Below are positions 12 to 64,000 of a DNA stretch of 64,000 nt, piece after piece. The position numbers and the translations under genes are program-made. The first letter of the stretch is position 1. Each line of letters begins with the position of its first letter. The notes beneath the pieces are model-generated. The model was not told where the DNA came from, ran no database searches, and saw only the letters and a list, made by a program, of their open reading frames with translations. The DNA is from Ylistrum balloti (taxonomy: Eukaryota). Location of the stretch: positions 62,001-126,000 of the forward strand of contig NW_026781861.1 of the NCBI RefSeq assembly GCF_031769215.1. Direction: 5' to 3'.

Positions 12-149
12 CATTACACAAGAAACTCATCAACCTATCAGAAATGTCGGTGAGACCTTCAACACTGTCTGTCAGGTGTAGGAATTTGTTTGGCGGCATG
101 GAGACAGCAGATTTCATAAAATCCTGATCAGAGGTACTCAGATCAATTC
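12..149 (-). CDS. Exon: C-terminal third of basic VWA domain E (GIDLSTSDQDFMKSAVSMPPNKFLHL...LMSFLCN)
   Basis: tgtcag acceptor, gtatgt donor, 138 nt, phase 1-1. Completes the VWA begun at 4290. Not in the ORF track. Confidence 0.85.
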
Positions 150-3100
150 CTGACAACAAAAAATGAAATTACATATATCAACACAGAGGTTCTTGTACGT
201 AAACTTATTTCAGTGTTTTATTAAGGTACGTTATGTTTTGCACGATTTTATCATTTCAAAATAAATATTCCGTAGACTTTCATTTATTTTTTCTTTTGAT
301 TACCGATTACCTTTTCCTTGAAATATGACCCAATTATTGTTGATAGATGATTATGATGTCAGACCCATTGTGACGTCATTTTTGCTTAGTTGTCATTGAT
401 TCATTAATTATTAAGCAGATGATAGAATATAAAGCTATTTCACATGGCCGCTACGTATATAAGTCTTAGAATGTCATCCGTGAGATAAAATAACCATATC
501 AGTATGACTAAATGATTTTGACGTCATAATATAGCGCTGAAAATTCAGAGCCGATAACTTCTCGACGTTCTTTAATATTCTATTCCTCAAAATTTAAAAA
601 GGTATCACTAGTAATGTCATTTAAACACAAGAATTGAAATGAAATCATTAAACTTCTTTCAAAACTTAATGTATTTTGATAGACACAAGTGAATTACGTT
701 TACGTCCTTTTAGGATGTCAAGGGCCTAACCTTTGAAGCCTAGGAAACGATTGAAGAAAATCAGTTAAAATAGAGCTAATACGATAACGCCCTACTTCAA
801 TAAATGTAATATTTTATCTGATAATTTCCAAAGAACGTGAAGTTCAAGTGTAACAAATTTTACACTGCCTTAGAAACGGCGTGAAAGTTCACGTACCGAT
901 TCCCATTACTCTGACGCCTCTCATCTTGATCTTGTTGGCTTGCTTGATGACGTTGCTCTCGTCGCGCATGCTCTTTGTAATGAATACCACATATCTTGGG
1001 ATACGTGTCCTGGAGTTAGGAAGTAGGCGCAAGTTCGCTTTTCTCAAAGCCTCAGCTGGATTAGGATCATATGCTCCCTTACTCCTGGTTAAGTAAACGT
1101 TGACGTAAAAAAGTTGAAGAATGAAAAAATAAAACACAAGGAAATGGTTTTATATGAAAATAAAGGTAGAATGAATGCGATGTGCAATAATCTAAATACG
1201 ACATTAAGCTTTATCAAAACAAAATTCACTGATGCAATTATTGTAATGACGTCATAATGTCGTCATGACAGTCATTTATCGAAATCGCTTTGTTTTTATT
1301 TTCATGTAAATCTTTAGGCAGTGTCATTGCATCAATTTTGACTTTTAATTGAAAAAAGAATGTTAAGGCGTCGGTATTTTCTTTCTTACAGTTCCTCAAA
1401 ACACAGGGCGGGTGGGGGGAGGGGCAATCAATTCCATGCCCGTTCTTTATGGCTATCAATTCCATGCCCGTTCTTTATGGTTATCAATTCCATGCCCGTT
1501 CTTTATGTCGGGTCAACAGAGAGACAAATTTGGATCTTTGTACAATACATATTTAAATGAAATTTAAGTCTATATATATTTAATTAAAAATAAAAATGCG
1601 GTTTTATTCATTTAAACACTTTACACTGTTGATTGGTTCATGGTTTGTAGAGACTATGCTATTTATAACTCCTTACACTAATAAAGAAAGTCCAGTTCAA
1701 TGTCCTAACACGATTGTCAATAGGTCATTTTCCTCTTCACGGATAATACAGGTGTTCGAGCAAGACATTAGGATATAGGTTCACCTGCGTTCGCGCGCGT
1801 TCTCCATTTCCACCGACAGGAAGACCCCTAAACGGGCTTCTATTTGCGTCCACGATCCAAGTTATTATTGGCCGGTAAAATTTTTGCATAATTGTGTAAA
1901 AAAAGTACATATCTGTGAATGGAATATCTATATATAGATTTCATTATCATCGACTATCATTCAACACTATGTATGGTTATATACTTCCACAGGGTTTCAA
2001 ACATTGACATTACCGCTGAATGGATAGCAGTGAAAGCGGAGATAAGATTTATAGTCATGAATGAGTGATTTTCAATTTGAATGAGAAATGAATCTGTTTG
2101 TGTTCTGTGACACGAGTCGCTCAGCTGTGTTTAACATCTCACAGAGGTCTTGTCCCATCTTCCATTCATGTTTAAATGATATACAAATTGTAATGGTGTT
2201 AGATTACAAACTTCGTGTCTTAGGTAAAATTTCAGGATGAACAGCTTACTCTGGTTTTTAATTTGGGTCACAGATTTATATGAAAACATATGACGATAAT
2301 AACTGATTCTGCCCCTCGGTGTGGGGTCTGCCTCAGGATACAATATCAAGTTGGGAAACTTGTTTAAATCATTTTTAAAAATGCAGATTTTAAAAAGCGT
2401 CAATAATTAATTTCCTTGATTGTGAGCCATCACCAAAACTCTTAAAAAGAAGTATAATATTTACAACACTTTAAAACAAGTTATATCTTTTTTTTTTTAA
2501 ATCTGTTACACTGTTTTAGGCCGGTCGGTATTGTGTACGGTTCAGGCCGGTCGGTAGTGTGTACGGTTCAGGCCGGTCGGTAGTGTGTACGGTTCAGGCT
2601 GGTCGGTAGTGGGTACGGTTCAGGCCGGTCGGTAGTGGGTACGGCTCAGGCTGGTCGGTAGTGGGTACGGTTCAGGCTGGTCGGTATTGTGTACGGTTCA
2701 GGCCGGTCGGTAGTGGGTACGGTTCAGGCTGGTCGGTAGTGGGTACGGTTCAGGCCGGTCGGTAGTGGGTACGGTTCAGGCCGGGCTGGACCTAACAATC
2801 ACCATCGACCTTACGGTCAACACTACGGACCTTCAGGCTGGTCGGACCTTTCCATTGTGTATCGGCATCACCACCCCGACATAACCATCACCACCTGACC
2901 ATCATCACCCCGATTTTACCATCACCACCCCGACCTCAGCATCACCACCCGACATAACCATCACCACCTGACCTTACTATCACCACCCCGACCTTACCAT
3001 CACCACCCTGTCCTTACCATCACCACCTGACCTTACCATCACCACATTGACCTTACTGTCACCAACCGACCATACCATCACCACCCGATCTTACCATCAC

Positions 3101-6100
3101 CACCCTGACATTACGGTCACCATTCGACCTTATCGTCAACAACCCGGCCTTACTATCACTATCCCGACCTTACTATCACCACCCCGACCTTACATCACCA
3201 CCCCGACCTTACCAATACCACACGACCTTACAATCATCACCCTGAACTTACGGTCACCACTTGACATTATCGTCGACACTCCGGCCTTACGATCACCATC
3301 CCGACCTTACTATCACCACCTCCGTCTTTACCATCACCACCTCCGTCCTTACTATCACCATCCCGACCTTACCATCACTACCCCGACCTTACCATCACCA
3401 CTCCGACTTTACCATCAACACTCGACCTTACTGTCACCACCCCGACCTTACCATCACTACCCCGACCTTACTGTCACCACCCCGACCTTACCATCACTAC
3501 CCCGACCTTACCATCACCACCCCGACCTTACCATCACCACTGCGAACTTACCATCACCCCGACCTAACCATCACAGCCCGACCTAACCATCACCACCCCG
3601 TCCTTATCGGCAACACCCTGACGTTTCAGTTAACAACAAGACTTTACCGTTCAGGTTATAAGCTTAATCATGACGTGACCAATTATAGTACTTAACGTTA
3701 CCGTTTAAAAGACTACGGCAGTTGACGCTATATATCAATACACTATTGATAACCATTGATTGATTGATTGGTTGATTGGTAGATATTGATGCATTGACAT
3801 TATACTTTGTATAACGTAGAAAATTAGCAATAATAAAATCAACGAAATTAACTTAAATGTTCACAAAACAAAATTAACATAAGTATCGGAATATTGCGTA
3901 CTGTTCATAATTAAATTAAATTGTATGTATTCCGTTAGACACGTAAATACTTCATTTGATAGGATACAACGTAAATTTTTAAAATTACTTCAGGCAAGAC
4001 GCCGTGGACAGAGTCTATCTGAAACGTGAACATTTGACAAGAAATTAATAGTAATTACTTTAGACCAGACACCACAGACAGGATCGATTTCTTTTTGGAC
4101 GTCCTACTTAATGTCAGTTTGACTCTGGAGTATTTGGCGAAACTGACAATGCCTGCTCTGAACTTGTGTCGTTTGAACTGCATCCTTTTGATGACGCTGC
4201 GCAGGAATCGTTTCACGCTGCGGAGTTCCTTCCGGCTGACGTAGCGGGATGTATCCACCACAAATACCACATCCGCTGCCGCATCACATCCTGTGTCAAA
4301 AGATCTCCCTTGTGAAATGACGAATTGTCTATATCTAGCTTGAAACATTTCTTAGAATTAAAATTTTAGAACAGAAATTTGCGACACGATGATGAGTAAT
4401 CTGTATGGCTTGTTATGGAAATAGAATGTAATATTTACCATTCTTTTATTTTCTGTTTATTTTTGGTTTCAGGAATGTACTATCAGATTAAAAAAAATAT
4501 ATTATTTGTCAAATGACAAAAAAAAAAAAAAAAAAAAAGCACAAATATGTTCGTAGAATTGAAAAAAATCTCTAATTGTTCGGATGCCTGAATACCTACT
4601 TTTCTCGCAAGTGTCACCAGTATAGCCAGGAACACATTCACACACAAATCCGTTTCCATTTTCACGACACTGTCCTCCATTACTGCAAGGATTCACGTCA
4701 CAATAGCTTTCATCTGGAACAGATAATTGGAAAAATTGTTAAGTATACTTCTTATTCTGTCTATATTTGGAAACTGAGAATCTCTGCATAGTCTCTACAA
4801 ACCATGAACCAAGAGAAACCGTGCACCATTGTTACAATAGTTAAACTCTTAGAATTTGGCCATTAAAATTCGCCCTCTGCAGATAATGAAAATAAATTGG
4901 ATGTAACAGGCCTGTAACGTATTAGCAATTTAGCCGGGGTATTGCGACATATGATAATGCGTATAAAAACCTATGAAAAGGCTGCCGCCCGCCGACTTAA
5001 TCAAATCTGTATCTCCTAGATAACATGGACTACTGGCGAGTTCCTCGTACAAACCTCAATTTATAATGTGCAATTCCCCTATACTGTCCATAATTCATGA
5101 TACGGCAACTGTCGGCTAAAACAGGTTCATTAAGTTCTGTGGTCGTGGGAAACACGTTATAAATTCAAATGGGATAAACAACTAGCATGCTATGTAAACT
5201 TTCCAATATGGGATGTCCGTACCCAACATCGATACGTGTACTTAGACGTATTGGAAAATTTTGATTAATTGATCATACGACGGCGTATCTTTTGCAAATC
5301 ATTAATGAGTCACAGAGTCCTAAAATGGTTGAGGTCACCAACTTACCTCTTTTGTCAAAACACTAACATTGTTGATATCTTGTTCACCATAATAATATAA
5401 TTAGCGAAAAAACTTATGATTCGTAAAAAAAAATTCAGACACTCTTACACCCATGGAGAACCGGTATGGTAATTCCCATTAACAAATGTATCGAACTTGT
5501 TTCTTTCTGGATGTTAAAGCACATTTATCTTTGAATTCATTTATATTATCCGCATATGCTTGCCTTCAAACACGGGTCTTAAGACCTGGTCCGCCAGTCC
5601 GTTACGTAATCCATCTGCACCGTTGATTTCAATTGTGTTTGAGCCTTGTACGTTGGCGATGTTTTCCACATCTGTCTTTACTCTTAAGTCGATTCCGATA
5701 GGGACGATCCTGATGCCGGAATTAATGGCTAATTCAGCTTCCTGCATTGTAGTGTCAGCATTTATCTCCACCGAGCCGTCTGTCAGTAGATACGCAATAT
5801 TGCGCACATCCGGTCTGTCATTTCCGGTATTGAACATATTCACGCGCACTGTTTCGAAGGCAGACGCCATATTTGCTTGGCCTCTGGTATAATGTATAGC
5901 GTCAATAGCGCGGACAATTGTCTCCGTGTCCCTGTTAAAAGTTTAGTATCAAAGAACAAAAAATTGATGAAAAGGCATTTTTGTGTCAATGTTATGGTTT
6001 CCAGCTTAAGAAAAATCATCACGATGGAGTTTAAAATAAACCATTTATCTTTTTTGTTATCAAGTGACACGTTCCTAATTTCTATCTTATACAAAACAAT

Positions 6101-9100
6101 ACTTAAAAGAAAAGAACAAACACCTATTGGAGAAAGCTAGTCTGCCTATGCTTAATCAAAATAATGGAACATTTAACAGCTTTAGATCAAATTAATGCAT
6201 ATCATAAGTAAGATGTGTCATTGAATTAGAATGCTGCTGTTCAGAAAAATCGACCACTTGAATATTTTTACATTATGTTTACCTAAATGCTCCTATGTTA
6301 AATTGCACCATGGACGCTGAGCTGTACTTCATGACACCGACTTGGATGTCACATGACTCGATATTCATCTTACGCACGAGCTCTTCTGCATACGTTTTCA
6401 TTCTCTGGAAAGTACTCTGTCCGATACTCGTGGATGAGTCCAGCATAAACACCACATCTGCGGACTGACCACAGGCTGAAACACAACAGAAACGGTGTTA
6501 TAGTTATACTAATATATACTATATATATATATAGATATATATCATTTTTAGGTTATTAAGAAATAAGCCATTGAACGTTTTTCTAAGCTTGTTTTTTTGG
6601 GAGGTAGCTATTTTTGCGATTTTATTTCATTCTCGTGAAATCAGAGCCTTCGAAAAAAATAAGTCTTTATTGTGTACAACAGTGTAATTCTGAGTTTGTT
6701 TTGTTCACGAGAATATCTGGATGTAAGCTCAACAGCTTTGATAAACAAAGTCTCTAATATGAGCAATGTCTGGAACGACAATAAACATATTGCATCTCTG
6801 GAGTTAATGGTTTTATTTACACGTTTACACAATAGTATTTTATATGGCTCAACACATGATCAGAGAAACAATAACTTAAATTGATATCTGTTGTTGATGT
6901 CAGAACTTTGGGAACTCTCCTGTGTGAAATTTTGATTAAAACAAACAAGTTTGGACGATTGTATTACAAGATATCTATTGCTTATGTCAGAACTTTGGGA
7001 ACTCTCCTGTGAGAACAATCTATTCCAACAAACAATTCTGAACAAGATATATGTTGTTTATGTCATACATATGAAGGTTTCAGATACATAGTTATACAAA
7101 TGCGTTAGTATTATACAATTACTGATAGCATTATTTGCTGTGGAATGTTGTTTTAAAGTCAGTATCAAAATCTTCTTATTTGGCAAGCTAATCTGTGTAG
7201 TGTACCTGTCAATTGTTACATTATAGTTACACACGTGACATTGTAATGCTACATTATAATTACACGCGTGACATTATAATGTTACAATATAGTCACACAC
7301 GTGATATTATAATGTTACATTATAATTACACACGTGACATTATAGTTACACACGTGACATCGGAATCGTATCGCGGTCATGTTTTCTAATCACGTTTTAG
7401 AGCATCGTACATGTAGGTTTAAATTCATTACAAGTTACTCTTCACGCCTTCTCTACTTAACGTATTCCTCAAGACAGAAATAGGAAATTTGTTCATATGA
7501 ATTTTACTAGGAAAATGAGGAATTTGTAGGATCATTTTGATATAAAAAATATCGCATATCTAAACGATTTCTCTGTTTCTGGGTGAAACGTTTCATTGTA
7601 TAGAGAGGATATTTGTATCAACTTTTAGGCGATTTTAACACATTTTGACAAAAATGAGTTTGAAAATTACATACTTATCCAATAACGCTTCATCTTAGTA
7701 AGTTAAAAATGAAAGTAGTCTACTTTAAGTTTATAGTTCGTTTGTAGAAGTAATTTAAATGCTCAACATATGTCTTTTACTTTAGATTTGTCTTATCTCT
7801 GGTTTGGTTCATGAGGAAAAAATCCCACGTGTTCTAATAGATTGTTGGAATGAATGACAACATCAACTCACAGGCACCTCCATTCAAATCCAACTGTTGT
7901 CTTCAGTCATAATTATTTAATTTCTAATTATCTATATGTATCGCTCTGTTACCGCTCTATTAGACACGTGCCTTTCTCTTTGAAATGATTACTATGGACA
8001 TAAACACATTATACATGTGATATAGATTGGCATTTGCAGGAAAGATATTCTTTGATCAGCACTTGAGAAAGACATTGGCGTATCTTGTGAACGTATGTAG
8101 GAACAACACAACGTCTTAATATCTGCATCTGTCTTTCGGGTATTTACCGGCAACATTCTTATCTCTCCGTGGCAGGTGTGCCAAATCGACTTGTCAATCA
8201 GTCATACTTATTAATAATTACACAAGAGAAACGTTCGTCTACAAGTATTTTATGATATTGTTCTTTTCTTCTTTCTTTTCTAGCACTCCGACGATTTCAG
8301 TTTCGAAGTGAGTATTCTCAGCAATTCTGTTATTGATATGTGAATTGCTTTGATGTTAAAGAACATTTGTATTAGTTAAATCCTAATAATATTTGATAAT
8401 TATTAATAGTAAAAAAAACAATAGATATTCAAATGAAGGAAACACGTGTAGGATTCCTGGGACAGTAATTTAGGCAGAAATCAAATTCCTCCTTGACAAC
8501 ACCGTGGTGGAGTGCCGGTAAAAACATTTAGAAAAATGACTGATGACTAAGGATTATGAAATACCGATGTGAAGTGCCGGAAAAATATTAGGAACATTCA
8601 TTGAAGATTAAGAATTATGAAACACGGGGCTAGTGACCTGCCCTTCTAGATTTTACGGGGCTAGTGACCTGCCCTTCTAGGTTTTACGGGGCTAGTGACC
8701 TCCCCTTCTAGGTTTTACGGGATTAGTGACCTCCCCTTCTAGGTTTTACGGGGCTAGTGACCTCCCCGTGTTTTACTGGGCTAGTGACCTTCCCTTCTAG
8801 GTTTTACGGGGCTAGTGACCTTCCCTTCTAGGTTTTACGGGGCTAGTGACCTTCCCTTCTAGGTTTTACTGGGCTAGTGACCTTCCCTTCTAGGTTTTAC
8901 GGGGCTAGTGACCTTCCCTTCTAGGTTTTACGGGGCTAGTGACCTTCCCTTCTAGGTTTTACGCTGCTAGTGACCTTCCCTTCTAGGTTTTACGGGGCTA
9001 GTGACCTGCCCTTCTAGGTTTGAGGTTTTACGGGGCTAGTGACCTCCCCTTCTAGATTTTACGGGGCTAGTGACCTCCCCTTCTAGGTTTTACGGGACTA

Positions 9101-39100: not shown

Positions 39101-39710
39101 ATAAAAAACATGTATGTATTATACATATGTTTCAAGCATAAAGCTATTACAAGAATACGTCACATGATGCACGTGAAGTTTGCGACGTAAACGCAACATT
39201 AACGTTCCTTTCGAAAACATTTCTATTACACAAAGAAAACAATTTGGACGCAATAAACATATTACTGTCTACAATGGTTCATTCAAATTGTAAATCGATA
39301 TGTAAGGTAGTATTATAGATAGGCAGATTTGTCAGGATGTAAGCATTCCAGACGTAATGAAAACCATACGAGGCACCTGTACATTAATACACAGAAAACA
39401 ATAAACATGACTGAATGCAATCAACATAGAACACCTGTACACAAATACACAACAGGGGAAGACAAAAAATGTGGTGAGCTGCAACCCACATTTGATCTGA
39501 CCTCTGACCTCATTCACCACGTTACCTGTTTCTATCGCAGTTGATGTACCAATAGTTGTGGTTGTGGACGGACTCGTAGTTGTTGTCATGGTAGCAGTAG
39601 TGGTAGTAGTAGTGGTAGCAGTAGTAGTACGTACACGTGTGGACACTATTAGCACACAGAACAATTCATATGTACGGGACATTATTGACGTTACACGTGT
39701 GGCAAATGTT

Positions 39711-39764
<54 letters not shown>

Positions 39765-39881
39765 CACACACAGAGAGACAGAGAGAGACAGAGAGAGACA
39801 GAACACACAAACACACATACAAACAGAACACACGCATACAGACTGAACACACACGCACACATACACACACTTATACACACA

Positions 39882-39934
<53 letters not shown>

Positions 39935-54900: not shown

Positions 54901-57900
54901 ACTTCCATAGATATAGGGAATTTCATCGATAGCCTGGTATATTTCAGCCTTTGTTGAATAGGAGTTCAAGTTAAACTGAATTTCTACCCCGGAACTGTAG
55001 ATCAAGGCACCGACACGTACGTTTCCAGAGTCAATGTCGGCGTTCTTGAGGAAATCCTTACAGAAAGCCAGCATTTTATCGTAGTTTTCCTGTCCTACAC
55101 TGGTGGAGGCATCGATGATGATGACCAGATCGACTTTGGACAAGGCGCAGTCTACACAAAATAAAAAAAATATTTGTAGTCCAAATTGGACTATTTCATA
55201 AATACTCATTAAAGAATTTATATGAAGATAATAAGTTGAAATATCAAATTATATTAACCATTTAGTAGAACTGATGATTACTGATATCATGTGTATATAA
55301 GCAATCGATACTAATAATACACTGGATATACTTTAGTCGCATTAGATGTAAGAATAAGTTATCATACCCACGTAATAGGAAGCTTTAGCCGATCTAATGT
55401 TCGATATGAAATGAAAGCACTATTTAATCGAGAATTTAATTCCTGATATCAAGGTATTTAACCTCGAATACACCATCTATGTGAAGTTAATCTTTGTTAA
55501 TATTCCCTTAATAAATTACACGATCCCTTTTAAAAGTAATACTTCTTAGTTGCATTTTAGAATCCGTAAAAATGGAAGATAAAAAACAATAGAAATCGAT
55601 GTGTGTTCGGTTGCTGGATAAAACCATCAACGAACGTGGATATATACAAGGAAATATCCAATCAAAAAAATGTTGTTCTCATTAAACAGATTTTAAATGC
55701 AATGCAAAAAAGTAAGATCATGTTTCAAAATGAGATCATGGTAAACTACGAAGGAAACATCAAGTATACAGACGAACGTCAAACACGGTAAACATCTGTG
55801 GAACCAATAGGTGTACTATCGAACATCAGACACTGTAAACGACAGCAGGACCAATAGGTATACTATCGACAGCAAAACCAATAGTTATACTATCGAACAT
55901 CAGACACTGTAAACGACAGCAAAACCAATAGTTATACTAACGAACATCAGACACTGTAAACGACAGCAGAACCAATAGTTATACTAACGAACATCAGACA
56001 CTGTAAACGACAGCAAAACTAATAGTTATATTAACGAACATCAGACACTGTAAACGACACCAGGACTAATAGGTATACTATCGAACAACAAACACTGTAA
56101 ACGACAGCAAAACCAATAGTTATATTAACGAACATCAGACACTGTAAACGACAGCAGGACCATTAGGTATACTATCGAACATCAGACACGGTAAACGACA
56201 GCAGAACCAATAGTTATACTAACGAACATCAGACACGGTAAACACGAAGAAACTATCAGATATACAAACGATGACCAGATACCGTAAACAATAGCGGAAC
56301 CAACACGAGTTCGAAAAATGTCCAGTGTCACACCGCAAAAGGAAACTGTGTTTCCCAATGTCATCATTATTTCCGTATCATCTGAATGAACGATGATTCC
56401 CCCAATCAAACCAACTAATGTTACTTACCTGAAGGGGGAGGGAGCGTGATTGGTAATGGAGTGGTAGCTATAGAAACGAAAAAAAAGAACACAGGTTGAA
56501 CTTAAACAGTGAATTATGTTGTTTGTATACATGATTAAATCGACTATTTTTGGTTCTTTACATTTACCCGGTAGTTAATATGTTATAACACAGTGTTTGG
56601 AATTAGACTGATATGCTAATTATGACATATATTTCTTCTATTACTCAAGTCGTATTAAAATACCTTTAAACCTTTCTCTCTGTACCGGACACTATTTGTA
56701 GAGAACAGTGATCGAATTCTTTATTCACATGTGTCTTTTCTACAATCTTTATAAACACAAAATCTGAAGATGAAGAATGTTATATCTATATCTGATGAGA
56801 CTCAATCGAGGTTTGCAGAGGTCAAAACCTCTTAGTTTGCTTGTTGTTTTTTTATCATGTATTTATTGCATTTGGAAACAACCTCCCCCCAGCCCATTCC
56901 ACAAAAAGAAAACCAAAATGTTATTTAAGAATTATTCGAAACCCTTATCTTCAAACATTTCTGTTAAGGTATTGAAGACCTGATGACCGGTTCCTACTTA
57001 CTTGGTGGCGGGTAGGGTCTACCACGGAACCCATCAGGTGGCTGTTCCGGTACTGTAAGAAAGGAACAAATTATATTGCAATTTCAAAAAATAGTGGGAA
57101 ATTAACATACTGATCATTATTTCATAGATAGTAAGTAAATTAAACTAATATATATATAACACAAAAACAAAAGATCATTCTTTAATAAATAGTTAGTAAA
57201 AGTTTATCAAGTAAAACAAACTAAAAACATGTATATATGTAACACAAAAACAACAGAAGAACTGATTAATCAAATTACCTACCTTCCTTACATGTTATTT
57301 ATCAATCATTCTTTCATGACATATTTTATTATCATTTTGATACTTTGATAATTTTCAGGTGACTGTTATGCACATTCAAATTTGCACTGATGATTATCTA
57401 TAACCATTTTCAAGTCTCCGATTTTTTAAAGCGAGATGGTATATGAAAAGTTGATGTTCACATAAATTTGCAAACCATATTGCCATTACAATACGTGATA
57501 TTAAATGACATGTCAAGAAAAGGATCATAGGAAATATAGCTCACATGCTTCTAACATCGCTAACTCGTCGTCGATATCCTCCGGTCGGTCAGATATAAGG
57601 AACAGACGTTGGTATTCCTCCAGTGGATGTGACGACACCTCGTCCAGTTCACTGTGGTCTCGGAGTCCTACTCCAACCGTGAATAAGTAATTACCGTCAT
57701 TTTCATTTTTCTCTGCAGCCCGGAATGCTTCGTACCTATCAGTGCTTTCGTCATTTCCGGTAATCAAGAGAATAAAGTTTCTCGCAAAATCTCTGTCGCC
57801 ATTGTCAGGTCTGAACATCTCCGTTCTCACATAATCTAAAGCAGCCGCGGTGTTGGTCTCCCCTGGCTGATACTGGATATCGTCCATGGCAGCCACAACA

Positions 57901-60900
57901 CCATCCTTTGTTAAGTAATCGTCCAGCTGGAATTGAGCGGCCTGATCAGTACTGTACCTAAGGAGACCTACTCGGAACCTCCCATCGTTAATACTTAGTT
58001 GACCTGCCACCATTTTCGCATAATTACGAATCCATTCGAACTTTTCTGGTGTAACAGACGAATCCAAGACGATGACAAGATCGAACGCTCTTGGATCTGG
58101 GAGTTGAGTCACTACAACCACGAAAACATTTGGTATATTATAAAAATGGTAAATGCTTTGTCACAATCTGTAGAATATCAATAGATAATCCATATAGTTC
58201 AAAAAATAATTACCCTTAGTTGATTTTTTTAACGTATAAGTTGATCTAGTATTGAAGTTTGCATTTGTTACATAATACCATATTCCAGAGCATCTAATTT
58301 ATTAAGATATACTCAAAATAACTGATGTAATGTCGCTAATATCATCAACATAACAGTTCAAATTAAAATATAAATAATTACTTTATTAAATCGAAACCTG
58401 TAAGTTTAACGTTCAATACTTAACCGAATGGTGTTATATATTGTGTGATTTTTAAGCATTACCAACAAAAGTCATTTGTTTTGATGAAAAAAATGCAAGC
58501 GTCAAAAACAGGGATTTTGTTTACAGTATTTCCGTTCCAGGCACTTTCAGAATTAAAATTCACAGCCCCTCCCCCTTCCCACTCCACCCAAGAAAAAACA
58601 AAAACAAAAAATAAACCCTAAACAAAACAAATACAAAACATAACAAAAACAAATCCGATTTGTTATAATAATTAAGACTTCAAAGAACTATATAATAGAA
58701 TGGAAATGCATTTCCATAAAACATGCACGTGTTAATTGCATGTTTACCTCTTAGAGTAGTTGTCGGAGTATCAGTAGTTCTTGGCTCTTCTGTCGGTATA
58801 CGTCCTAACACATACAGACACAGACAGTGCAATAAAGTGTAATACATATTACAATGTGATACATAACAGTTTGTGATACACAATACACAGTGCTATATAT
58901 AATACAGGAAATACGTGATACATTGTGATATATAACAAAATAGTACAAAACAATGTGCAATACACGATACATACAGTGTTATACACCACACTGATTAATA
59001 CACAATATGGTGTTGAACAATAAGAAACATCATACAGTTTTAGAAGAGGTAACAGTTGAATACAATGTCGCATACATATATACCGAACATATTCCCCGGA
59101 ACAAAAATATACGCCCACATATATTTATATTTAGATTTTTATATGGGCTTCAGATCAATTGCTATTATGTGAACGAAAATTCCCAACATAGACATATACA
59201 TTCACAAACGAGTACTTAAACATACGGGGAAAAGAAAATGCGTAAACGAAAGTGATTTGTGCAGTGTAATATGTAAATTAGCGTAACAGTAGAGGAAATA
59301 CAGATTGATCAAGAACATTACATTGAATCCATATAAAGTGGTGCCTAATACGTGACAAAAGCAGTGCAATGTCTCAAGGTAGTAGTTCGCTATAGAAACG
59401 GATATGTATGAATATTATTTTCAAAGGAAGAAACATCCACCAGATTGTCTTTTATCATACTAATATTATCGTTCTGGTGTTTTGTATTTGTGTATATCAG
59501 TAATCTGAACATACCTGGACAGAGAGAAGAGAAGACCTGGTCACTGAGAGCATTCAACTCGTCAAATGTCTGCACGTTGAAGCTGTTTTCCGATGAGGGT
59601 TTGTTAGCGATACCGTCTAACTCCTTCGTGTCTTTCAGACCGATACCAATAGCATACACATGTATGTCTGCATCCCTGGCCCGGTCCGCTTCCGGAATGG
59701 TTCTCCGGGAGTTGATGTTGGATACACCGTCTGTTAAGATGATACAGATGTTGGGAACGTCAGCACGGTCTCCATCGGCAGCATTGAACATGTTCCTCAT
59801 TGTCAGCAGCGCATCAGCGGTGTTCGTACTTCCATAGATATAGGGAATTTCATCGATAGCCTGGTATATTTCAGCCTTTGTTGAATAGGAGTTCAAGTTA
59901 AACTGAATTTCTACCCCGGAACTGTAGATCAAGGCACCGACACGTACGTTTCCAGAGTCAATGTCGGCGTTCTTGAGGAAATCCTTACAGAAAGCCAGCA
60001 TTTTATCGTAGTTTTCCTGTCCTACACTGGTGGAGGCATCGATGATGATGACCAGATCGACTTTGGACAAGGCGCAGTCTACACAAAATAAAAAAAATAT
60101 TTGTAGTCCAAATTGGACTATTTCATAATTACTCATTGAAGAATTCATATGACGCTGGATTTACTTTAGTCGCATTAGATATAAGAATAAGTTATCATAC
60201 CCACGCAATAGGAAGCTTTAGTCGATCTAATGTTCGATATGAAATGAAAGCACTATTTAATCGAGAATTTAATTCCTGATATCAAGGTACTTAACCTCGA
60301 ATACACCATCAATGTGAAGTTAATCTTTGTTAATATTCCCTTAATAAATTACACGATCCCTTTTAAAAGTAATACTTCTTAGTTGCATTTTAGAATCCGT
60401 AAATATGGAGGATAAAAAAACAATAGAAATCGATGTGTGTTCGGTTGCTGGATAAAACCATCAACGAACGTGGATATATACAAGGAAATATCCAATCAAA
60501 AAAATGTTGTTCTCATTAAACAGATTTTAAATGCAATGCAAAAAAGTAAGATCATGTTTCAAAATGAGATCATGGTAAACTACGAAGGAAACATCAAGTA
60601 TACAGACGAACGTCAAACACGGTAAACATCTGTGGAACTAATAGTTATACTATCGACAGCAAAACTAATAGTTATGCTATCGAACATCAGACACTGTAAA
60701 CGACAGCAAAACTAATAGTTATATTAACGACCATCAGACACTGTAAACGACAGCAAAACCAATAGTTATACTAACGAACATCAGACACTGTAAACGACAG
60801 CAAAACCAATAGTTATACTAACGAACATCAGACACTGTAAACGACAGCAGAACCAATAGTTATACTAACGAACATCAGACACTGTAAACGACAGCAAAAC

Positions 60901-63694
60901 TAATAGTTATATTAACGAACATCAGACACTGTAAACGACAGGCAAACCAATAGTTATACTAATGAACATTAGACACTGTAAACGACAGCAAAACCAATAG
61001 TTATATTAACGAACATCAGACACTGTAAACGACAGCAGGACCATTAGGTATACTATCGAACATCAGACACGGTAAACGACAGCAGAACCAATAGTTATAC
61101 TAACGAACATACTAACGAACTGTACTCACGACCATCAGACACTGTAAACACGAAGAAACTATCAGATATACAAACGATGACCAGATACCGTAAACAATAG
61201 CGGAACCAACACGAGTTCGAAAAATATCCAGTGTCACACCGCAAAAGGAAACTGTGTTTCCCAATGTCATCATTATTTCCGTATCATCTGAATGAACGAT
61301 GATTCCCCCAATCAAACCAACTAATGTTACTTACCTGAAGGGGGAGGGAGCGTGATTGGTAATGGAGTGGTAGCTATAGAAACGAAAAAAAAAAGAACAC
61401 ATGTTCAACTTAAAGAGTGAATTATGTTGTTTGTATACATGATTAAATCGACTATTTTTGGTTCTTTACATTTACCCGGTAGTTAATATGTTATAACACA
61501 GTGTTTGGAATTAGACTGATATGCTAATTATGACATATATTTCTTCTATTACTCAAGTCGTATTAAAATACCTTTAAACCTTTCTCTCTGTACCGGACAC
61601 TATTTGTAGAGAACAGTGATCGAATTCTTTATTCACATGTGTCTTTTCTACAATCTTTATAAACACAAAATCTGAAGATGAAGAATGTTATATCTATATC
61701 TGATGAGACTCAATCGAGGTTTGCAGAGGTCAAAACCTCTTAGTTTGCTTGTTGTTTTTTTATCATGTATTTATTGCATTTGGAAACAACCTCCCCCCAG
61801 CCCATTCCACAAAAAGAAAACCAAAATGTTATTTAAGAATTATTCGAAACCCTTATCTTCAAACATTTCTGTTAAGGTATTGAAGACCTGATGACCGGTT
61901 CCTACTTACTTGGTGGCGGGTAGGGTCTACCACGGAACCCATCAGGTGGCTGTTCCGGTACTGTAAGAAAGGAACAAATTATATTGCAATTTCAAAAAAT
62001 AGTGGGAAATTAACATACTGATCATTATTTCATAGATAGTAAGTAAATTAAACTAATATATATATAACACAAAAACAAAAGATCATTCTTTAATAAATAG
62101 TTAGTAAAAGTTTATCAAGTAAAACAAACTAAAAACATGTATATATGTAACACAAAAACAACAGAAGAACTGATTAATCAAATTACCTACCTTCCTTACA
62201 TGTTATTTATCAATCATTCTTTCATGACATATTTTATTATCATTTTGATACTTTGATAATTTGCAGGTGACTGTTATGCACATTCAAATTTGCACTGATG
62301 ATTATCTATAACCATTTTCAAGTCTCCGATTTTTTAAAGCGAGATGGTATATGAAAAGTTGATGTTCACATAAATTTGCAAACCATATTGCCATTACAAT
62401 ACGTGATATTAAATGACATGTCAAGAAAAGGATCATAGGAAATATAGCTCACATGCTTCTAACATCGCTAACTCGTCGTCGATATCCTCCGGTCGGTCAG
62501 ATATAAGGAACAGACGTTGGTATTCCTCCAGTGGATGTGACGACACCTCGTCCAGTTCACTGTGGTCTCGGAGTCCGACTCCAACCGTGAATAAGTAATT
62601 ACCGTCATTTTCATTTTTCTCTGCAGCCCGGAATGCTTCGTACCTATCAGTGCTTTCGTCATTTCCGGTAATCAAGAGAATAAAGTTTCTCGCAAAATCT
62701 CTGTCGCCATTGTCAGGTCTGAACATCTCCGTTCTCACATAATCTAAAGCAGCCGCGGTGTTGGTCTCCCCTGGCTGATACTGGATATCGTCCATGGCAG
62801 CCACAACACCATCCTTTGTTAAGTAATCGTCCAGCTGGAATTGGGCGGCCTGATCAGTACTGTACCTAAGGAGACCTACTCGGAACCTCCCATCGTTAAT
62901 ACTTAGTTGACCTGCCACCATTTTCGCATAATTACGAATCCATTCGAACTTTTCTGGTGTAACAGACGAATCCAAGACGATGACAAGATCGAACGCTCTT
63001 GGATCTGGGAGTTGAGTCACTACAACCACGAAAACATTTGGTATATTATAATCTGTAGAATTTCAGTAGATAATTCATATAGTTAAAAGAATGATTAACC
63101 TTAGTTGATTTTTTTAACGTATAAGTTGATATAGTATTGAAGTTTGCATTTGTTACATAATACTATATTCCAGAGCATCTAATTTATTAAGATATACTCA
63201 AAATAACTGATGTAATGTCGCTAATATCATCAACATAACAGTTCAAATTAAAATATAAATAATTACTTTATTAAATCGAAACCTGTAAGTTTAACTTTCA
63301 ATACTTAACCGAATAGTTTTATATATTGTGTGATTTTTAAGCATTACCAACAAAAGTCATTGGTTTTGATAAAAAGAAAATGCAAGTGTCAATAAAACAG
63401 GGACTTTGTTTACGGTCTTACGGTTCCAGGCACTTTCAGAATTAAAATTCATCGCCCCTCCCCCTTCCCACTCCACCCAAGAAAAAACAAAAAACAAAAA
63501 ATAAACCCTAAACAAAACAAATACAAAACATAACAAAAACAAATCCGATTTGTTATGATAATTAAGACTTCAAAGAACTATATAATAGAATGGAAATGCA
63601 TTTCCATAAAACATGCACGTGTTAATTGCATGTTTACCTCTTAGAGTAGTTGTCGGAGTATCAGTAGTTCTTGGCTCTTCTGTCGGTATACGTC
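12..63694 (-). CDS. Partial multi-exon gene (34 exons in window, ~2716 aa) for a giant multi-VWA/EGF extracellular protein with mucin-like linkers (collagen-VI/matrilin-like architecture)
   Basis: Exons join in frame at AG acceptors and GT donors (one GC donor). There are 12 VWA domains (e.g. DLVIIIDASTSVG...GSTNTADAL...LTDG) and 2 six-Cys EGF exons. Neither start nor stop codon lies in the window. Confidence 0.92.
897..1084 (-). CDS. Exon: middle of VWA domain E (SKGAYDPNPAEALRKA...YVVFITKS...GVRVMGI)
   Basis: accag acceptor, gtacgt donor, 188 nt, phase 2-1. Frame matches both neighbours. Confidence 0.85.
1429..1507. repeat. 28-bp tandem repeat, ~3 copies
   Basis: caattccatgcccgttctttatgg(c/t)tat. 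Confidence 0.85.
2518..2785. repeat. 26-bp minisatellite, ~10 copies
   Basis: caggc(c/t)ggtcggtagtg(g/t)gtacggtt. Confidence 0.95.
2865..3620. repeat. ~20-bp C-rich degenerate minisatellite
   Basis: accatcaccaccccgacctt. Source of the spurious Pro/His/Thr ORFs. Confidence 0.95.
4059..4290 (-). CDS. Exon: N-terminal part of VWA domain E (CDAAADVVFVVDTSRYVSRKELRSVKRFL...)
   Basis: acacag acceptor, gtaatt donor, 232 nt, phase 1-2. Carries the VWA beta-A motif DVVFVVD. Confidence 0.88.
4600..4713 (-). CDS. Exon: EGF-like domain (DESYCDVNPCSNGGQCRENGNGFVCECVPGYTGDTCEK)
   Basis: Six-cysteine EGF spacing, ttccag acceptor, gtaggt donor, 114 nt, phase 1-1. Confidence 0.92.
5564..5931 (-). CDS. Exon: C-terminal part of VWA domain D (DTETIVRAIDAIHY...DRPDVRNIAYLLTDG...RPVFE)
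   Basis: taacag acceptor, donor AG/gcaagc (GC), 368 nt, phase 2-1. Confidence 0.85.
6283..6475 (-). CDS. Exon: N-terminal part of VWA domain D (CGQSADVVFMLDSSTSIGQSTF...)
   Basis: tttcag acceptor, gtaaac donor, 193 nt, phase 1-2, DxSxS motif. Not in the ORF track. Confidence 0.9.
7205..7360. repeat. ~20-bp degenerate tandem repeat
   Basis: cattatagttacacacgtga variants. Confidence 0.75.
8626..9720. repeat. 31-bp minisatellite, ~35 copies
   Basis: ggggctagtgacct(c/t/g)cccttctaggttttac. Confidence 0.97.
10248..13731 (-). mobile_element. Decayed DNA transposon with ~190-200 bp inverted ends and a DDE_Tnp_4 (PIF/Harbinger-ISL2EU-like) transposase
   Basis: 10248-10449 (cagcttaattacgtggagtcagaatctcg...) is the near-perfect reverse complement of 13541-13731. 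The interior holds transposase remnants. Confidence 0.8.
10590..12560 (-). pseudogene. Disrupted transposase: DDE_Tnp_4-like core plus C-terminal SWIM zinc finger
   Basis: Fragments ILDRTYIYLNK...FQRASY, NNDASI, MIVDRGFRD, TKVRWVVESYHGRLKKW, then YYCVCPAGKRTSGMCAHVAS (CxC...CxH). Several stops and frameshifts lie between them. Confidence 0.8.
14409..14522 (-). CDS. Exon: EGF-like domain (DINLCMENPCHNGGFCIDGLRSYMCVCTEGFYGDNCQN)
   Basis: Six-cysteine EGF spacing, tggcag acceptor, gtaagt donor, 114 nt, phase 1-1. Confidence 0.92.
14565..15130. repeat. ~19-23 bp minisatellite continuous with an exon donor site
   Basis: Minus-strand unit ATT(A/G)TGTACAGGTACATAC. Confidence 0.93.
15122..15370 (-). 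CDS. Exon: C-terminal half of VWA domain C (DVPNVIVIITDGESNIN...ITPLCT)
   Basis: tggtag acceptor, gtacat donor, 249 nt, phase 1-1. Confidence 0.9.
15904..16221 (-). CDS. Exon: N-terminal half of VWA domain C (CTSTADVVFILDTSGSVGRDNF...GRTNTADAF...GDRL)
   Basis: atatag acceptor, gtatgt donor, 318 nt, phase 1-1, intact DxSxS. Confidence 0.9.
17530..17772. repeat. Low-complexity aaagttgtaca tandem repeat
   Basis: Direct inspection. Confidence 0.9.
17832..17906 (-). CDS. Linker exon (MPDKPPKARRRPRPPPTTPRPRPEG)
   Basis: ttacag acceptor after a T-rich tract, gtaagt donor, 75 nt, phase 1-1. Confidence 0.82.
18480..18830 (+). mobile_element. Decayed pearl/CvA-like (Helentron-associated) non-autonomous element
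   Basis: aggtcaa/gtgacct core, degenerate (ACGG)n tract near 18745-18780 and a short GC-rich end. Family assignment is from recalled bivalve repeat structure, not a search. Confidence 0.4.
21115..21290. mobile_element. MITE family member, inverted copy
   Basis: The reverse complement aligns by eye to 25968-26130. Confidence 0.6.
23115..25245 (+). mobile_element. Possible extent of the MULE element
   Basis: Weak inverted similarity between atcctgactttcctaaaact (23121) and gttttgggacaatcaggaat (25221) flanking the transposase remnant. Ends are uncertain. Confidence 0.4.
23650..24850 (+). pseudogene. Disrupted Mutator-like (MULE) transposase with N-terminal FLYWCH-type zinc finger
   Basis: TY*RCCIRTCPATINT...HQHNH (FLYWCH-like), YCDGTFYTCPRFFTQLYTIH, YPLVFALLP, GCFFHF, RTTNSLDGWHSKL, HPNIYLFV. 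Stops and frameshifts are present. Confidence 0.85.
25335..25545 (-). repeat. Dispersed ~200 bp repeat, also at 32145-32340 (+), with partial copies at 29650-29750 and near 16370-16430
   Basis: Shared aaactagggcaaat..gaacaaaagaaagatt and catcgacgaca..c.ccatgtaaatcttggtca.tccaagtaagtaat..cacgttctc. Confidence 0.75.
25968..26130. mobile_element. Short MITE family member (TACAGTCGAA(C)CTCGTTATCTCGAA-type end)
   Basis: Homologous to 21115-21290 (inverted) and 32850-33030. Repeated ctcgttatctcgaa / ttcgagataac motifs. Confidence 0.65.
26874..27221. mobile_element. MITE-like element with ~60 bp imperfect TIRs
   Basis: catcctcgatact...ctgcacccctggaacatg at the left end is mirrored at 27155-27221. 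Flanks aaccaacaa / aaccaaaga match at 7 of 9 positions. Confidence 0.6.
27478..27775. repeat. ~62-bp tandem repeat, ~5 copies
   Basis: gaccgtgtagtcat.gaaacgtcacactctaatcttctactgg.tgtgtt.taagatgaa. Confidence 0.9.
27837..28514 (-). CDS. Exon: (PTTPR/K)x8 mucin-like repeat plus type-B VWA domain (AFDLVVVMDSSVRPEVF...)
   Basis: ttacag acceptor, gtaagt donor, 678 nt, phase 1-1. Paralog of the type-B exons at 52628/57545/62453. Confidence 0.92.
29438..29642. repeat. ~34-bp tandem repeat, ~6 copies
   Basis: aaaaacgtgtacataagat(a/c)tattcacgtcatca. Confidence 0.9.
31548..31616 (-). CDS. Linker exon (GTPVPTERPTDASITRRPNEESR)
   Basis: ttgaag acceptor, gtatcc donor, 69 nt, phase 1-1. Resembles the GRIPTEEP linker exons. 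Confidence 0.75.
32550..32690 (-). CDS. Linker exon (ARPRYPPTRPSKYPMSTRRPHYPTRRPTLPSERSTARPSVSSTDGDR)
   Basis: aaacag acceptor, gtacca donor, 141 nt, phase 1-1. GC-richer island within AT-rich intron. Confidence 0.75.
32850..33030. mobile_element. MITE family member with both inverted ends
   Basis: Starts ccgaacctcgttatctcgaa and ends ttcgagataccgaggtccga. The interior resembles 25968-26130. Confidence 0.65.
34214..34300 (-). CDS. Linker exon (AKATTPTPTTPKPTTPQPTAAPTRAPTTT)
   Basis: gttcag acceptor, gtatat donor, 87 nt, phase 1-1. Confidence 0.82.
36664..37233 (-). CDS. Exon: type-A VWA domain (GCGLARVDIVFVIDSSTSVG...SLCP)
   Basis: attcag acceptor, gttagt donor, 570 nt, phase 1-1, intact MIDAS, terminal cysteines. 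Confidence 0.93.
37542..37574 (-). CDS. Linker mini-exon (EPPIPTPTPTA)
   Basis: gtaagt donor. The only usable AG is in gtaccag, giving 33 nt, phase 1-1. The start may extend to 37580 (see findings). Confidence 0.6.
39526..39645 (-). CDS. Thr-rich linker exon (VSTRVRTTTATTTTTTTATMTTTTSPSTTTTIGTSTAIET)
   Basis: taatag acceptor, gtaacg donor, 120 nt, phase 1-1. Confidence 0.8.
39714..39930. repeat. Compound (CA)n/(GA)n microsatellite
   Basis: Direct inspection. Confidence 0.97.
40345..40920 (-). CDS. Exon: type-A VWA domain (APSSCGLSDVDLVFLVDSSTSVG...SICP)
   Basis: tttcag acceptor, gtattt donor, 576 nt, phase 1-1, intact MIDAS. Confidence 0.93.
42706..43182. repeat. 40-42 bp minisatellite, ~12 copies
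   Basis: gaaactgtcgtccgtttctctc(tt)ttgatatttgtgtacaga. Confidence 0.95.
43465..44125. repeat. ~68-bp tandem repeat interrupted by the SINE
   Basis: atcaagatggacaggaccacatcagtatgtctgtctgtattacagtgttacctgaaatggctgtgtgtt. Confidence 0.88.
43737..43983 (-). mobile_element. tRNA-derived SINE (V-SINE-like central motif)
   Basis: Minus strand has A-box TGGCGCAGTGG, B-box GGTTCGATTCC, central GGGTTTTCCCCGGGTTCTCCGGTTTCCTCCCACA and an A/T-rich tail. Candidate 11-bp TSD TATG(C/T)CTGTCT at 43726 and 43984. Confidence 0.85.
46219..46260 (-). CDS. Linker mini-exon (VSTPVPSTLPPPTQ)
   Basis: cctttcag acceptor, gtaaga donor, 42 nt, phase 1-1. Paralog of the TTTPLPITLPPPS exons. Confidence 0.8.
47432..48182. 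repeat. 102-bp tandem repeat made of two ~51-bp halves, ~7 copies
   Basis: 34-aa period in the read-through ORF 47505-47903. Both halves begin (c/g)tgtac(a/g)at. Confidence 0.9.
49988..50035 (-). CDS. Linker mini-exon (GARGTEPPTTGPSREQ)
   Basis: tgatag acceptor, gtaagc donor, 48 nt, phase 1-1. Confidence 0.75.
50395..50958 (-). CDS. Exon: type-A VWA domain (CGLSKVDLIIILDSSTSVG...AFCP)
   Basis: ttacag acceptor, gtaggt donor, 564 nt, phase 1-1. Diverged paralog of 54588/59515. Confidence 0.93.
51506..51526 (-). pseudogene. Candidate dead linker mini-exon (STVPPKS) with the acceptor reading CAT instead of CAG
   Basis: Strong gtaaga donor, pyrimidine tract cccttattctgtttcat, 21 nt, phase 1-1. 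It sits at the position of the TTTPLPITLPPPS exon in the repeat unit. Confidence 0.5.
52185..52235 (-). CDS. Linker mini-exon (LPELPTPGFRPRPYSPA)
   Basis: tgatag acceptor, gtaagt donor, 51 nt, phase 1-1. Diverged paralog of LPEQPPDGFRGRPYPPP. Confidence 0.85.
52628..53194 (-). CDS. Exon: type-B VWA domain, duplicate copy 1 (VTQLPDPRAFDLVIVLDSSVTPEKF...AMLEA)
   Basis: ttgtag acceptor, gtaagt donor, 567 nt, phase 1-1. Confidence 0.92.
53830..53886 (-). CDS. Linker mini-exon (GRIPTEEPRTTDTPTTTLR), copy 1
   Basis: tgttag acceptor, gtaaac donor, 57 nt, phase 1-1. Confidence 0.85.
54588..55151 (-). CDS. Exon: type-A VWA domain, duplicate copy 1 (DCALSKVDLVIIIDASTSVG...SLCP)
   Basis: tgtgtag acceptor, gtatgt donor, 564 nt, phase 1-1, intact MIDAS. 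Confidence 0.93.
55795..56245. repeat. 47-bp minisatellite inside duplicated intron, copy 1
   Basis: aaaaccaatagttatactaacgaacatcagacactgtaaacgacagc. Confidence 0.93.
56429..56467 (-). CDS. Linker mini-exon (TTTPLPITLPPPS), copy 1
   Basis: ctatag acceptor, gtaagt donor, 39 nt, phase 1-1. Confidence 0.82.
57002..57052 (-). CDS. Linker mini-exon (LPEQPPDGFRGRPYPPP), copy 1
   Basis: ttacag acceptor, gtaagt donor, 51 nt, phase 1-1. Confidence 0.85.
57545..58111 (-). CDS. Exon: type-B VWA domain, copy 2
   Basis: ttgtag acceptor, gtgagc donor, 567 nt. Protein identical to copy 1. Confidence 0.92.
58748..58804 (-). CDS. Linker mini-exon (GRIPTEEPRTTDTPTTTLR), copy 2
   Basis: Identical to 53830-53886 with the same splice sites. 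Confidence 0.85.
59515..60078 (-). CDS. Exon: type-A VWA domain, copy 2
   Basis: Protein identical to 54588-55151, same splice sites, 564 nt. Confidence 0.92.
60630..61150. repeat. 47-bp minisatellite inside duplicated intron, copy 2 (longer)
   Basis: Same unit as 55795-56245 with different length and variant order. Confidence 0.93.
61335..61373 (-). CDS. Linker mini-exon (TTTPLPITLPPPS), copy 2
   Basis: Identical to 56429-56467. Confidence 0.82.
61910..61960 (-). CDS. Linker mini-exon (LPEQPPDGFRGRPYPPP), copy 2
   Basis: Identical to 57002-57052. Confidence 0.85.
62453..63019 (-). CDS. Exon: type-B VWA domain, copy 3
   Basis: 567 nt, same splice sites as copy 2. Protein identical, with silent differences near 62577 and 62844. 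Confidence 0.92.
63638..63694 (-). CDS. Linker mini-exon (GRIPTEEPRTTDTPTTTLR), copy 3
   Basis: Identical to the other two copies. The gene continues beyond the window. Confidence 0.85.
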
Positions 63695-64000
63695 CTAACA
63701 CATACAGACACAGACAGTGCAATAAAGTGTAATACATATTACAATGTGATACATAACAGTTTGTAATACACAATACACAGTGCTATATATAATACAGGAA
63801 ATACGTGATACATTGTAATATATAACAAAATAGTACAAAACAATGTGCAATACACGATACATACAGTGTTATACACCACACTGATTAATACACAATATGG
63901 TGTTGAACAATAAGAAACATCATACAGTTTTAGAAGAGGTAACAGTTGAATACAATGTCGCATACATATATACCGAACATATTCCCCGGAACAAAAACAT

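Follow-up and report, generated by a model that had tools for sequence, protein, structure and literature searches.

The window analysed here, a 64,000-nt stretch at C4:62,001-126,000 of a 648.5 Mb assembly, probably represents the 3′ portion of a single, very large gene on the minus strand that would encode an extracellular matrix protein of the beads-on-a-string type in a mollusc, probably a scallop, a reading to which a probability of about 0.7 is assigned. Same-strand VWA exons were found from window position -7,183 to +195,453 (signed positions are window coordinates continued beyond its edges), amounting to ~75 VWA units across ~200 kb. Most probably, all exons of the window are internal ones of the 3′-most gene of this array, and neither a start nor a stop falls within it. 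The analysis of the flanks covered C4:1-266,000.

Domain Content of the Window

The window has a G+C content of ~36% and is free of N. All of its coding signal and all of its long VWA-like open frames are on the minus strand. The Pfam profile PF00092 matched nine single-exon open frames with scores of 98-160.6 bits (E-values 1e-28 to 6e-47; cut-off 23.8) as well as pieces of three split VWAs with 40-88 bits, giving 12 VWA domains in total. A local VWA HMM was applied to all six-frame open stretches of the window and recovered exactly 12 VWA units, none of them on the plus strand. A cysteine-pattern scan detected two EGF-like exons that both exceed the PF00008 gathering score of 21.5 (Table 1). 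The inventory of 12 VWA and two EGF domains in a first-pass annotation of this DNA was reproduced by PF00092, the local HMM and PF00008.

Motif reading distinguishes two types of single-exon VWA. Type A domains possess a full MIDAS (DxSxS...T...D) and a cysteine at both ends, and type B domains are cysteine-free with an incomplete MIDAS (DSSVT/R, with the Asp of TDG absent). By the same reading, the motif is complete in the five type A domains, VWA10 and VWA11, and incomplete in the four type B domains and VWA12. A complete MIDAS is the motif for metal-dependent ligand binding.

The introns also contain other elements. A Harbinger-type DDE_Tnp_4 fragment (26 bits) and a SWIM-like piece are located inside an intron, at 10451-12408 on the minus strand. 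Three consecutive plus-strand ORFs at 23765-24785, likewise intronic and without a Pfam match, resemble what we take, as an impression only, to be a broken MULE-type transposase. Minisatellites with units of 20-102 bp occupy intronic positions 2866-3606, 8624-9723, 14565-15058, 42707-43188, 47429-48061, 55867-56243, and 60654-61110.

Exon Model and Intron Phases

An independent model of the window was assembled on the basis of a crude splice-site score of our own combined with homology and conservation. The model comprises 30 exons that total 2,536 codons, all with canonical AG/GT sites and free of internal stops (Table 1). Phase 1 was assigned to 27 of the 29 modelled introns, with the two phase-2 introns splitting VWA11 and VWA12. 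Aside from the phase-2 pieces of these split domains, the modelled VWA, EGF, and Pro/Thr linker exons have 3n length and are phase 1-1. Inclusion of two weak linker candidates would increase the model to 32 exons and ~2,609 codons. The first-pass totals of 34 exons and 2716 codons therefore were close, but the exact count was not recovered as two exons (~107 codons) could not be placed. The dominance of phase 1, put earlier at 31 of 33 introns, was seen again, accompanied by the two phase-2 introns. Moreover, the previous end points at 12 and 63694 coincide exactly with a donor and an acceptor in the new model. An alternative donor for the C-terminal exon of VWA11 is possible at 5606 and is likewise in phase 1.

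Table 1. Exons and other features of the VWA locus in gene order, from the 5′ end of the array to the low edge of the window. Signed positions lie outside the window; splice-site scores are from our own scoring.
Feature	Position	Strand	Phase	Remarks
Divergent VWAs	195-166 kb			Mostly MIDAS-less
Ser/Thr-rich mucin-like exon, 1,242 nt	+164,239..+165,480	same strand	1-1	3n
Phase-2-split VWA	~162 kb
Ig-domain exon	+157,516..+157,827	same strand	1-1	3n; Pfam Ig_3/I-set
A-like VWA block	153-121 kb
VWA block with built-in Pro/Thr tails	120-112 kb
Strict A/B alternation	107-50 kb			Holds 7.3 copies of 3.12 kb unit and ~2.5 copies of 4.9 kb unit
Last segment	within window			A, A, B, then EGF-interleaved tail
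Tandem copies (~2.3) of 4.9 kb unit	52623..64000			Self-BLAST 96-97.6% identity; array continues to ~64,970
L57 Pro/Thr linker, 57 nt	63638..63694	-	1-1	AG/GT, stop-free; identical in three 4.9 kb units; first exon of first-pass model
VWA type B, 567 nt	62453..63019	-	1-1	Pfam 98 bits; DSSVT, TDG Asp absent, Cys-free
L51 Pro-rich linker, 51 nt	61910..61960	-	1-1	Acceptor 6.6, donor 4.6
L39 Pro/Thr linker, 39 nt	61335..61373	-	1-1	Acceptor 7.4, donor 8.6
VWA type A, 564 nt	59515..60078	-	1-1	Pfam 146.6 bits; DASTS, T, TDG; Cys at both ends
L57 linker	58748..58804	-	1-1
VWA type B, 567 nt	57545..58111	-	1-1	2 synonymous differences versus copy 53194-52628
L51 linker	57002..57052	-	1-1
L39 linker	56429..56467	-	1-1
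VWA type A, 564 nt	54588..55151	-	1-1
L57 linker	53830..53886	-	1-1
VWA type B, 567 nt	52628..53194	-	1-1
L51-like linker	52185..52235	-	1-1	Diverged copy
VWA type A, 564 nt	50395..50958	-	1-1	Older paralogue; Pfam 136 bits; versus A1 pN 0.16, pS 0.83
Pro/Thr linker, 42 nt	46219..46260	-	1-1
VWA type A, 576 nt	40345..40920	-	1-1	Pfam 160.6 bits; 2 synonymous SNPs in independent DNA run
Pro/Thr linker, 33 nt	37542..37574	-	1-1
VWA type A, 570 nt	36664..37233	-	1-1	Pfam 142.1 bits
Thr/Arg-rich linker, 39 nt	34766..34804	-	1-1
Candidate Pro/Thr linker, 87 nt	34214..34300	-	1-1	Tentative; weak acceptor
Candidate Pro/Arg/Thr linker, 132 nt	32559..32690	-	1-1	Tentative; very weak acceptor
Mucin-like PTTPR/K repeat then type B VWA, 678 nt	27837..28514	-	1-1	Pfam 108.7 bits
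Pro/Arg-rich linker, 75 nt	17832..17906	-	1-1	Bridges A/B array to split-VWA/EGF tail
VWA10 N-terminal exon, 318 nt	15904..16221	-	1-1	DTSGS, TNT; Pfam 88 bits, profile 1-100
VWA10 C-terminal exon, 249 nt	15122..15370	-	1-1	TDG; Pfam profile 102-172
EGF exon, 114 nt	14409..14522	-	1-1	PF00008 42.1 bits
VWA11 N-terminal exon, 193 nt	6283..6475	-	1 in, 2 out
VWA11 C-terminal exon, 311 nt	5621..5931	-	2 in, 1 out	Pfam profile 59-155
EGF exon, 114 nt	4600..4713	-	1-1	PF00008 40.9 bits
VWA12 first exon, 250 nt	4059..4308	-	1 in, 2 out	Degenerate MIDAS; Pfam 49.6 bits, profile 1-71
VWA12 middle exon, 113 nt	897..1009	-	2 in, 1 out	Inferred; too short for Pfam
VWA12 last exon, 138 nt	12..149	-	1-1	Local VWA HMM positions 167-211; last exon of first-pass model

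The AG/GT context was inspected in each frame, and acceptors and donors then were scored blind to phase. When 63 complete VWA exons from across the extended locus were examined, phase 1 supplied the best acceptor in 50 cases and the best donor in 57. When copies that were at least 90% identical were collapsed into 35 clusters, the corresponding values were 31 and 33 (binomial test against one third, p = 2e-11 for acceptors and 5e-14 for donors). Small Pro/Thr-rich exons with strong splice sites are positioned between the VWA exons. The phase test and the exon model together uphold the proposal that VWA, EGF, and linker modules are symmetric 1-1 cassettes of 3n length.

Extent of the Locus Beyond the Window

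The first-pass annotation envisaged a protein with 12 VWAs and 2,716 codons. That protein is incomplete since the gene extends past both edges of the window: two VWA and two EGF domains are situated downstream and ~60 further same-strand VWA exons upstream. The downstream part consists of an EGF, the split VWA13, a second EGF, and finally VWA14, a single-exon domain whose frame terminates at a stop codon at -7,208, eight codons past the domain. Four orthologous ORFs from other sources similarly possess a stop five to eight codons past the same conserved Ser-Cys, and the closest of these four terminal ORFs is 88% identical with an identical tail. Further small 3′ exons are possible, since the stop in the last VWA exon is overlapped by a weak GT in phase 1. 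Inspection of the flanks for C-terminal domains and a signal peptide, which had been advised earlier, thus yielded an EGF/VWA tail with a stop for the former and heuristic candidates far upstream for the latter. Two plus-strand ORFs are 3′ neighbours of the VWA gene. The ORF at -19,144..-18,761, which was read by eye and which we take to resemble ribosomal protein S26, bounds the 3′ reach of the gene. The second, at -51,164..-49,512 (551 amino acids), presumably is B-box/TRIM-like, again as read by eye.

A whole-genome Pfam scan placed nearly half of 150 scored VWA matches in C4:54.8-257.4 kb. Same-strand arrays of single-exon VWAs on other contigs contain ~5-12 exons each, and the array on C4 is by far the largest. 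These other arrays are at C179:1.838-1.885 Mb, C364:0.36-0.47 Mb, C764:0.916-0.934 Mb, C202:0.354-0.369 Mb, C627:2.197-2.211 Mb, and C60:0.287-0.301 Mb. The order of exon types along the C4 array is included in Table 1; all non-VWA exons of the array that were checked are 3n in length and phase 1-1.

Two copies in the upstream part are defective. A type B exon at ~+83,113 has a 2-nt deletion 15 nt before the donor when compared with seven sister copies in the 3.12 kb array, which reflects either a frameshifted cassette or an assembly error. A VWA exon at +118,632..+119,265 is split over three reading frames and its DxSxS motif is mutated, which gives it the appearance of a cassette that has decayed within the array.

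One Gene or Several

Every VWA exon from 153 kb down to position 12 possesses both an acceptor and a donor. The array tentatively is read as one gene that extends from at least ~+153 kb, or possibly from a candidate signal-peptide exon at +183 or +201 kb, to the stop at -7.2 kb. This gene would specify a secreted protein with at least 64 VWAs and ~13,000-15,000 residues, the length of which may still be changing via selected 426-codon A+B units. The presence of at least 60 VWAs in one mRNA is judged to have slightly less than an even chance. Alternatively, the 200 kb array might be a cluster of separate multi-VWA genes that follow one another head to tail on the same strand, in which case the 12 VWAs of the window would belong to the 3′-most gene with its promoter and signal exon, for example, at 107-160 kb or possibly in a long intron of the window. 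This arrangement is regarded as plausible though less likely, and the evidence that bears on the choice is of four kinds.

The first concerns termini. Neither a stop-terminated VWA exon nor a credible first exon was found between 153 kb and -7 kb, which speaks against a cluster, and a scan of the same interval for exons with an ATG and a signal peptide produced no credible candidate. Signal-peptide-like first exons inside the array were rejected as polypyrimidine-tract read-through into linker exons only. Further upstream, two heuristic candidates were identified on the minus strand at +183,345..+183,405 and +200,688..+200,760. Both are ATG-initiated, encode a hydrophobic core as well as a plausible cleavage site preceded by small residues, and have a phase-1 donor, and the exons at +183,405 and +200,760 are considered candidate signal-peptide first exons of the VWA locus. 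With two such exons, at least two starts are possible, as would be expected for several genes.

The second concerns the pattern of exon types. EGF exons are confined to the 3′ end, and the EGF/VWA tail with its stop occurs once. The VWA sequence types sit in single blocks without the pattern of repeats that whole genes would leave. Both features disfavor a cluster, whereas the shift in exon type at ~153-166 kb (Ig exon, Ser/Thr-rich exon, and split VWA) would fit a border between genes. Thirdly, the amplified 3.12 and 4.9 kb units hold only A, B, and linker exons, and these blocks therefore are intragenic.

Lastly, size and the integrity of the copies are more readily accommodated by several genes. 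The largest relatives among 1.84 billion representative proteins have ~22 VWAs, annotated relatives have 6-22, and the other VWA-exon arrays of the genome are of ~5-12 exons only, so that a transcript with 60-75 VWAs would be unprecedented. The 2-nt deletion at ~83.1 kb and the broken VWA at ~119 kb imply that not all copies are in one frame unless the exons are skipped or the lesions are assembly errors; such defects could be tolerated if the copies were at the edges of genes or belonged to pseudogenes.

Amplification of A+B Units and Selection on the Exons

The 4.9 kb unit consists of a type A exon (564 nt), L57, a type B exon (567 nt), L51, and L39, which together make up 426 codons. The tandem copies in the window demonstrate that in-frame duplication, which the first-pass annotation had deemed possible, has occurred for whole units. 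Outside the window, the identity among the 3.12 kb units is 99.2-99.6%. When two complete 4.9 kb copies were compared, the introns differed at 101 of 3,571 aligned sites (2.8%) in addition to many indels. In the same comparison, the five exons differed at two of 1,278 sites (0.16%) and both changes were synonymous. The exons therefore are 18-fold less diverged than the introns (Fisher p = 1.6e-11). Even the three linker exons considered separately showed no differences at 147 sites (p = 0.015). A 47-bp minisatellite that numbers 8.0 copies in one of the 4.9 kb units and 9.7 in its neighbour explains part of the difference in unit length.

Older type A paralogues have retained intact frames and splice sites with pN of 0.16-0.27 compared to a saturated pS of 0.75-0.83 (pN/pS ~0.2-0.35). 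An independent genomic DNA run from another individual reproduced 35.9-41.0 kb contiguously with ~0.5% differences. Exons of this second individual carried two SNPs in 1,179 nt, both synonymous, compared to 22 in 3,482 nt of intron (p = 0.06). Overall, purifying selection acts on the modelled exons, even on the tiny linkers.

Inflation of the repeat copy number by assembly error, through haplotypes or collapsed or expanded long-read repeats, would mean that the true gene is shorter. The near-identity of the 3.12 kb units is in the range where assemblers miscount, and the 2-nt deletion in the type B exon could be a consensus error. However, the 4.9 kb copies in the window differ by 2.4-4% with many indels, which is far above the ~0.5% between individuals, and they therefore are distinct loci. 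Moreover, the contiguous recovery of 35.9-41.0 kb in the independent run, and the fact that most of the array (153-94 kb and 50-0 kb) is composed of diverged, unique exons, render this explanation improbable. That a large part of the array is an unexpressed relic in decay, with its neat phases due to recent duplication of one ancestral exon pair, is highly improbable: the sole sequencing run that matched the locus is genomic DNA whose contigs cross introns without joints (35000-40990), one B exon with a frameshift and one broken-up VWA exon are present upstream, and transposon remnants and minisatellites lie in the introns, but the strong conservation of exons relative to introns with synonymous changes only, the constraint on ancient paralogues, the synonymous nature of the exon SNPs within the species, and the open frames of 30 of 30 modelled window exons all are contrary to decay.

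Discussion

In the preferred reading of the locus as one very large gene, each bead of the encoded protein would be a VWA domain from one phase 1-1 exon. Within the window, MIDAS-complete type A domains, presumably clasped by a disulphide, would alternate with cysteine-free MIDAS-incomplete type B domains. The short Pro/Thr exons between the beads may supply spacers that probably are O-glycosylated. Split VWAs alternating with EGFs would form the C-terminal tail, which is predicted to end with the VWA exon whose stop is 7.2 kb past the low edge of the window. An extracellular multivalent scaffold is the natural reading of the EGFs, clasped VWAs, mucin-like linkers, and extracellular relatives. 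Such a scaffold could bind collagen or other ligands in the matrix through numerous weak, metal-dependent contacts of its VWAs, as collagen VI N-domains and PTMP1 do. Secretion and ligand binding are predicted from sequence, and a role in adhesion, mucus, byssus, or shell is putative. Protein length may be tuned by copy number and by exon skipping.

As every module is 3n in length and phase 1-1, whole A+B units can be amplified in frame. Unequal crossing-over probably amplified these units, and the copies have been retained under purifying selection. The locus is a clean natural case of exon-cassette amplification in progress, with units ~96-99.6% identical and selection preserving the amplified exons. 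If there is a single transcript, it would contain the largest VWA array known, with ~3 times the VWA number of any relative found, and its product would be among the largest animal matrix proteins.

Modular extracellular VWA/EGF proteins assembled from phase 1-1 exons are an ordinary design. The one-VWA-per-exon plan already is known, and multi-VWA "collagen VI-like" predictions are common in molluscs. The finding therefore is the correct annotation of an ordinary design and changes little. What sets the locus apart is quantitative: how large it is, and that its A+B units are still being amplified under selection. The scale of ~75 VWA exons on one strand is of interest for research on molluscan matrix and adhesive proteins.

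Comparison with Known Systems

The closest database proteins are molluscan multi-VWA predictions named COL6A, collagen alpha-3/4(VI)-like, matrilin-3-like, or cartilage matrix protein-like. Each of the eight repeats of Sinanodonta woodiana KAL3854705.1 (2,044 amino acids) is 62-66% identical to the type A exon, and Argopecten irradians XP_069108493.1 (1,243 amino acids) is a further example of these multi-VWA relatives. Models of this type resemble the locus in having VWA arrays without a collagen helix, but differ in that they possess six to eight type A domains only and an SRCR or other tail. The locus is ~10 times larger, and its type B exon is only ~35-38% identical to those models. Relatives of type B are few: 12 matches were retrieved, the best named of which is a Mizuhopecten fragment with 81% identity. 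Exon-level word searches of protein collections returned nothing above 67% for type A or 81% for type B. An 82,156-nt contig in ENA ERZ26168041 carries gene calls for same-strand VWA-only ORFs, both A-like and B-like, at intervals of 1.5-3 kb, which suggests a homologous array in another mollusc. The same contig also contains a TSP_1 ORF.

Byssal, adhesive, and shell-matrix VWA proteins include PTMP1, the Pinctada VWA proteins, and Pif/BMSP. Among solved structures, Mytilus PTMP1 ranks second for the type A exon (4cn8, 108.9 bits across two VWAs). VWA proteins occur in bivalve byssus, and PTMP1 is comparable to the predicted product in being an extracellular VWA protein, here from the adhesive holdfast of a bivalve (PMC12817120). 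However, PTMP1 has two VWAs and lacks EGFs, and the likeness is one of sequence only. Matrilins and AMACO (VWA2) share the alternation of VWA and EGF domains with the C-terminal part of the locus, and some relatives bear automatic names of the matrilin-3-like or cartilage matrix protein-like kind. In contrast to matrilins, the locus is without a C-terminal coiled coil, has far more VWAs, and its EGFs are single rather than in runs. Membership of the matrilins was rejected as only eight residues follow the last VWA without a coiled coil, although a weak alternative donor overlaps the stop.

Among solved structures, collagen VI alpha3 (9han_C) gave the highest score with the A exon as well as with the B exon. 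A 1990 report on chicken collagen alpha3(VI) describes a separate exon for every type A repeat and skipping of exons that varies the repeat number and generates isoforms (PMC2116307). The cassette idea thus is textbook for the VWA family. The predicted exon structure of the locus matches this plan of VWA repeats in individual exons that would be skippable in frame, and some collagen VI alpha3 domains also have an incomplete MIDAS. Nevertheless, no Gly-X-Y run of at least five triplets was present in the six frames of C4:1-266,000, and the locus thus is not a collagen VI orthologue. The earlier opinion that this is no ordinary collagen VI is borne out by the missing helix in the window and its flanks. 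The relatives do bear COL6A, collagen alpha-3(VI)-like, or matrilin-like names; automatic "collagen VI-like" labels on such genes mislead because the collagen helix is absent. An EGF-interleaved tail replaces the C-terminal domains of collagen VI, and Pro/Thr linker exons and strict A/B alternation set the locus further apart from alpha3. The locus contains ~75 VWA exons compared to 10-12 in vertebrate alpha3 and 20-22 in some fish and shark predictions.
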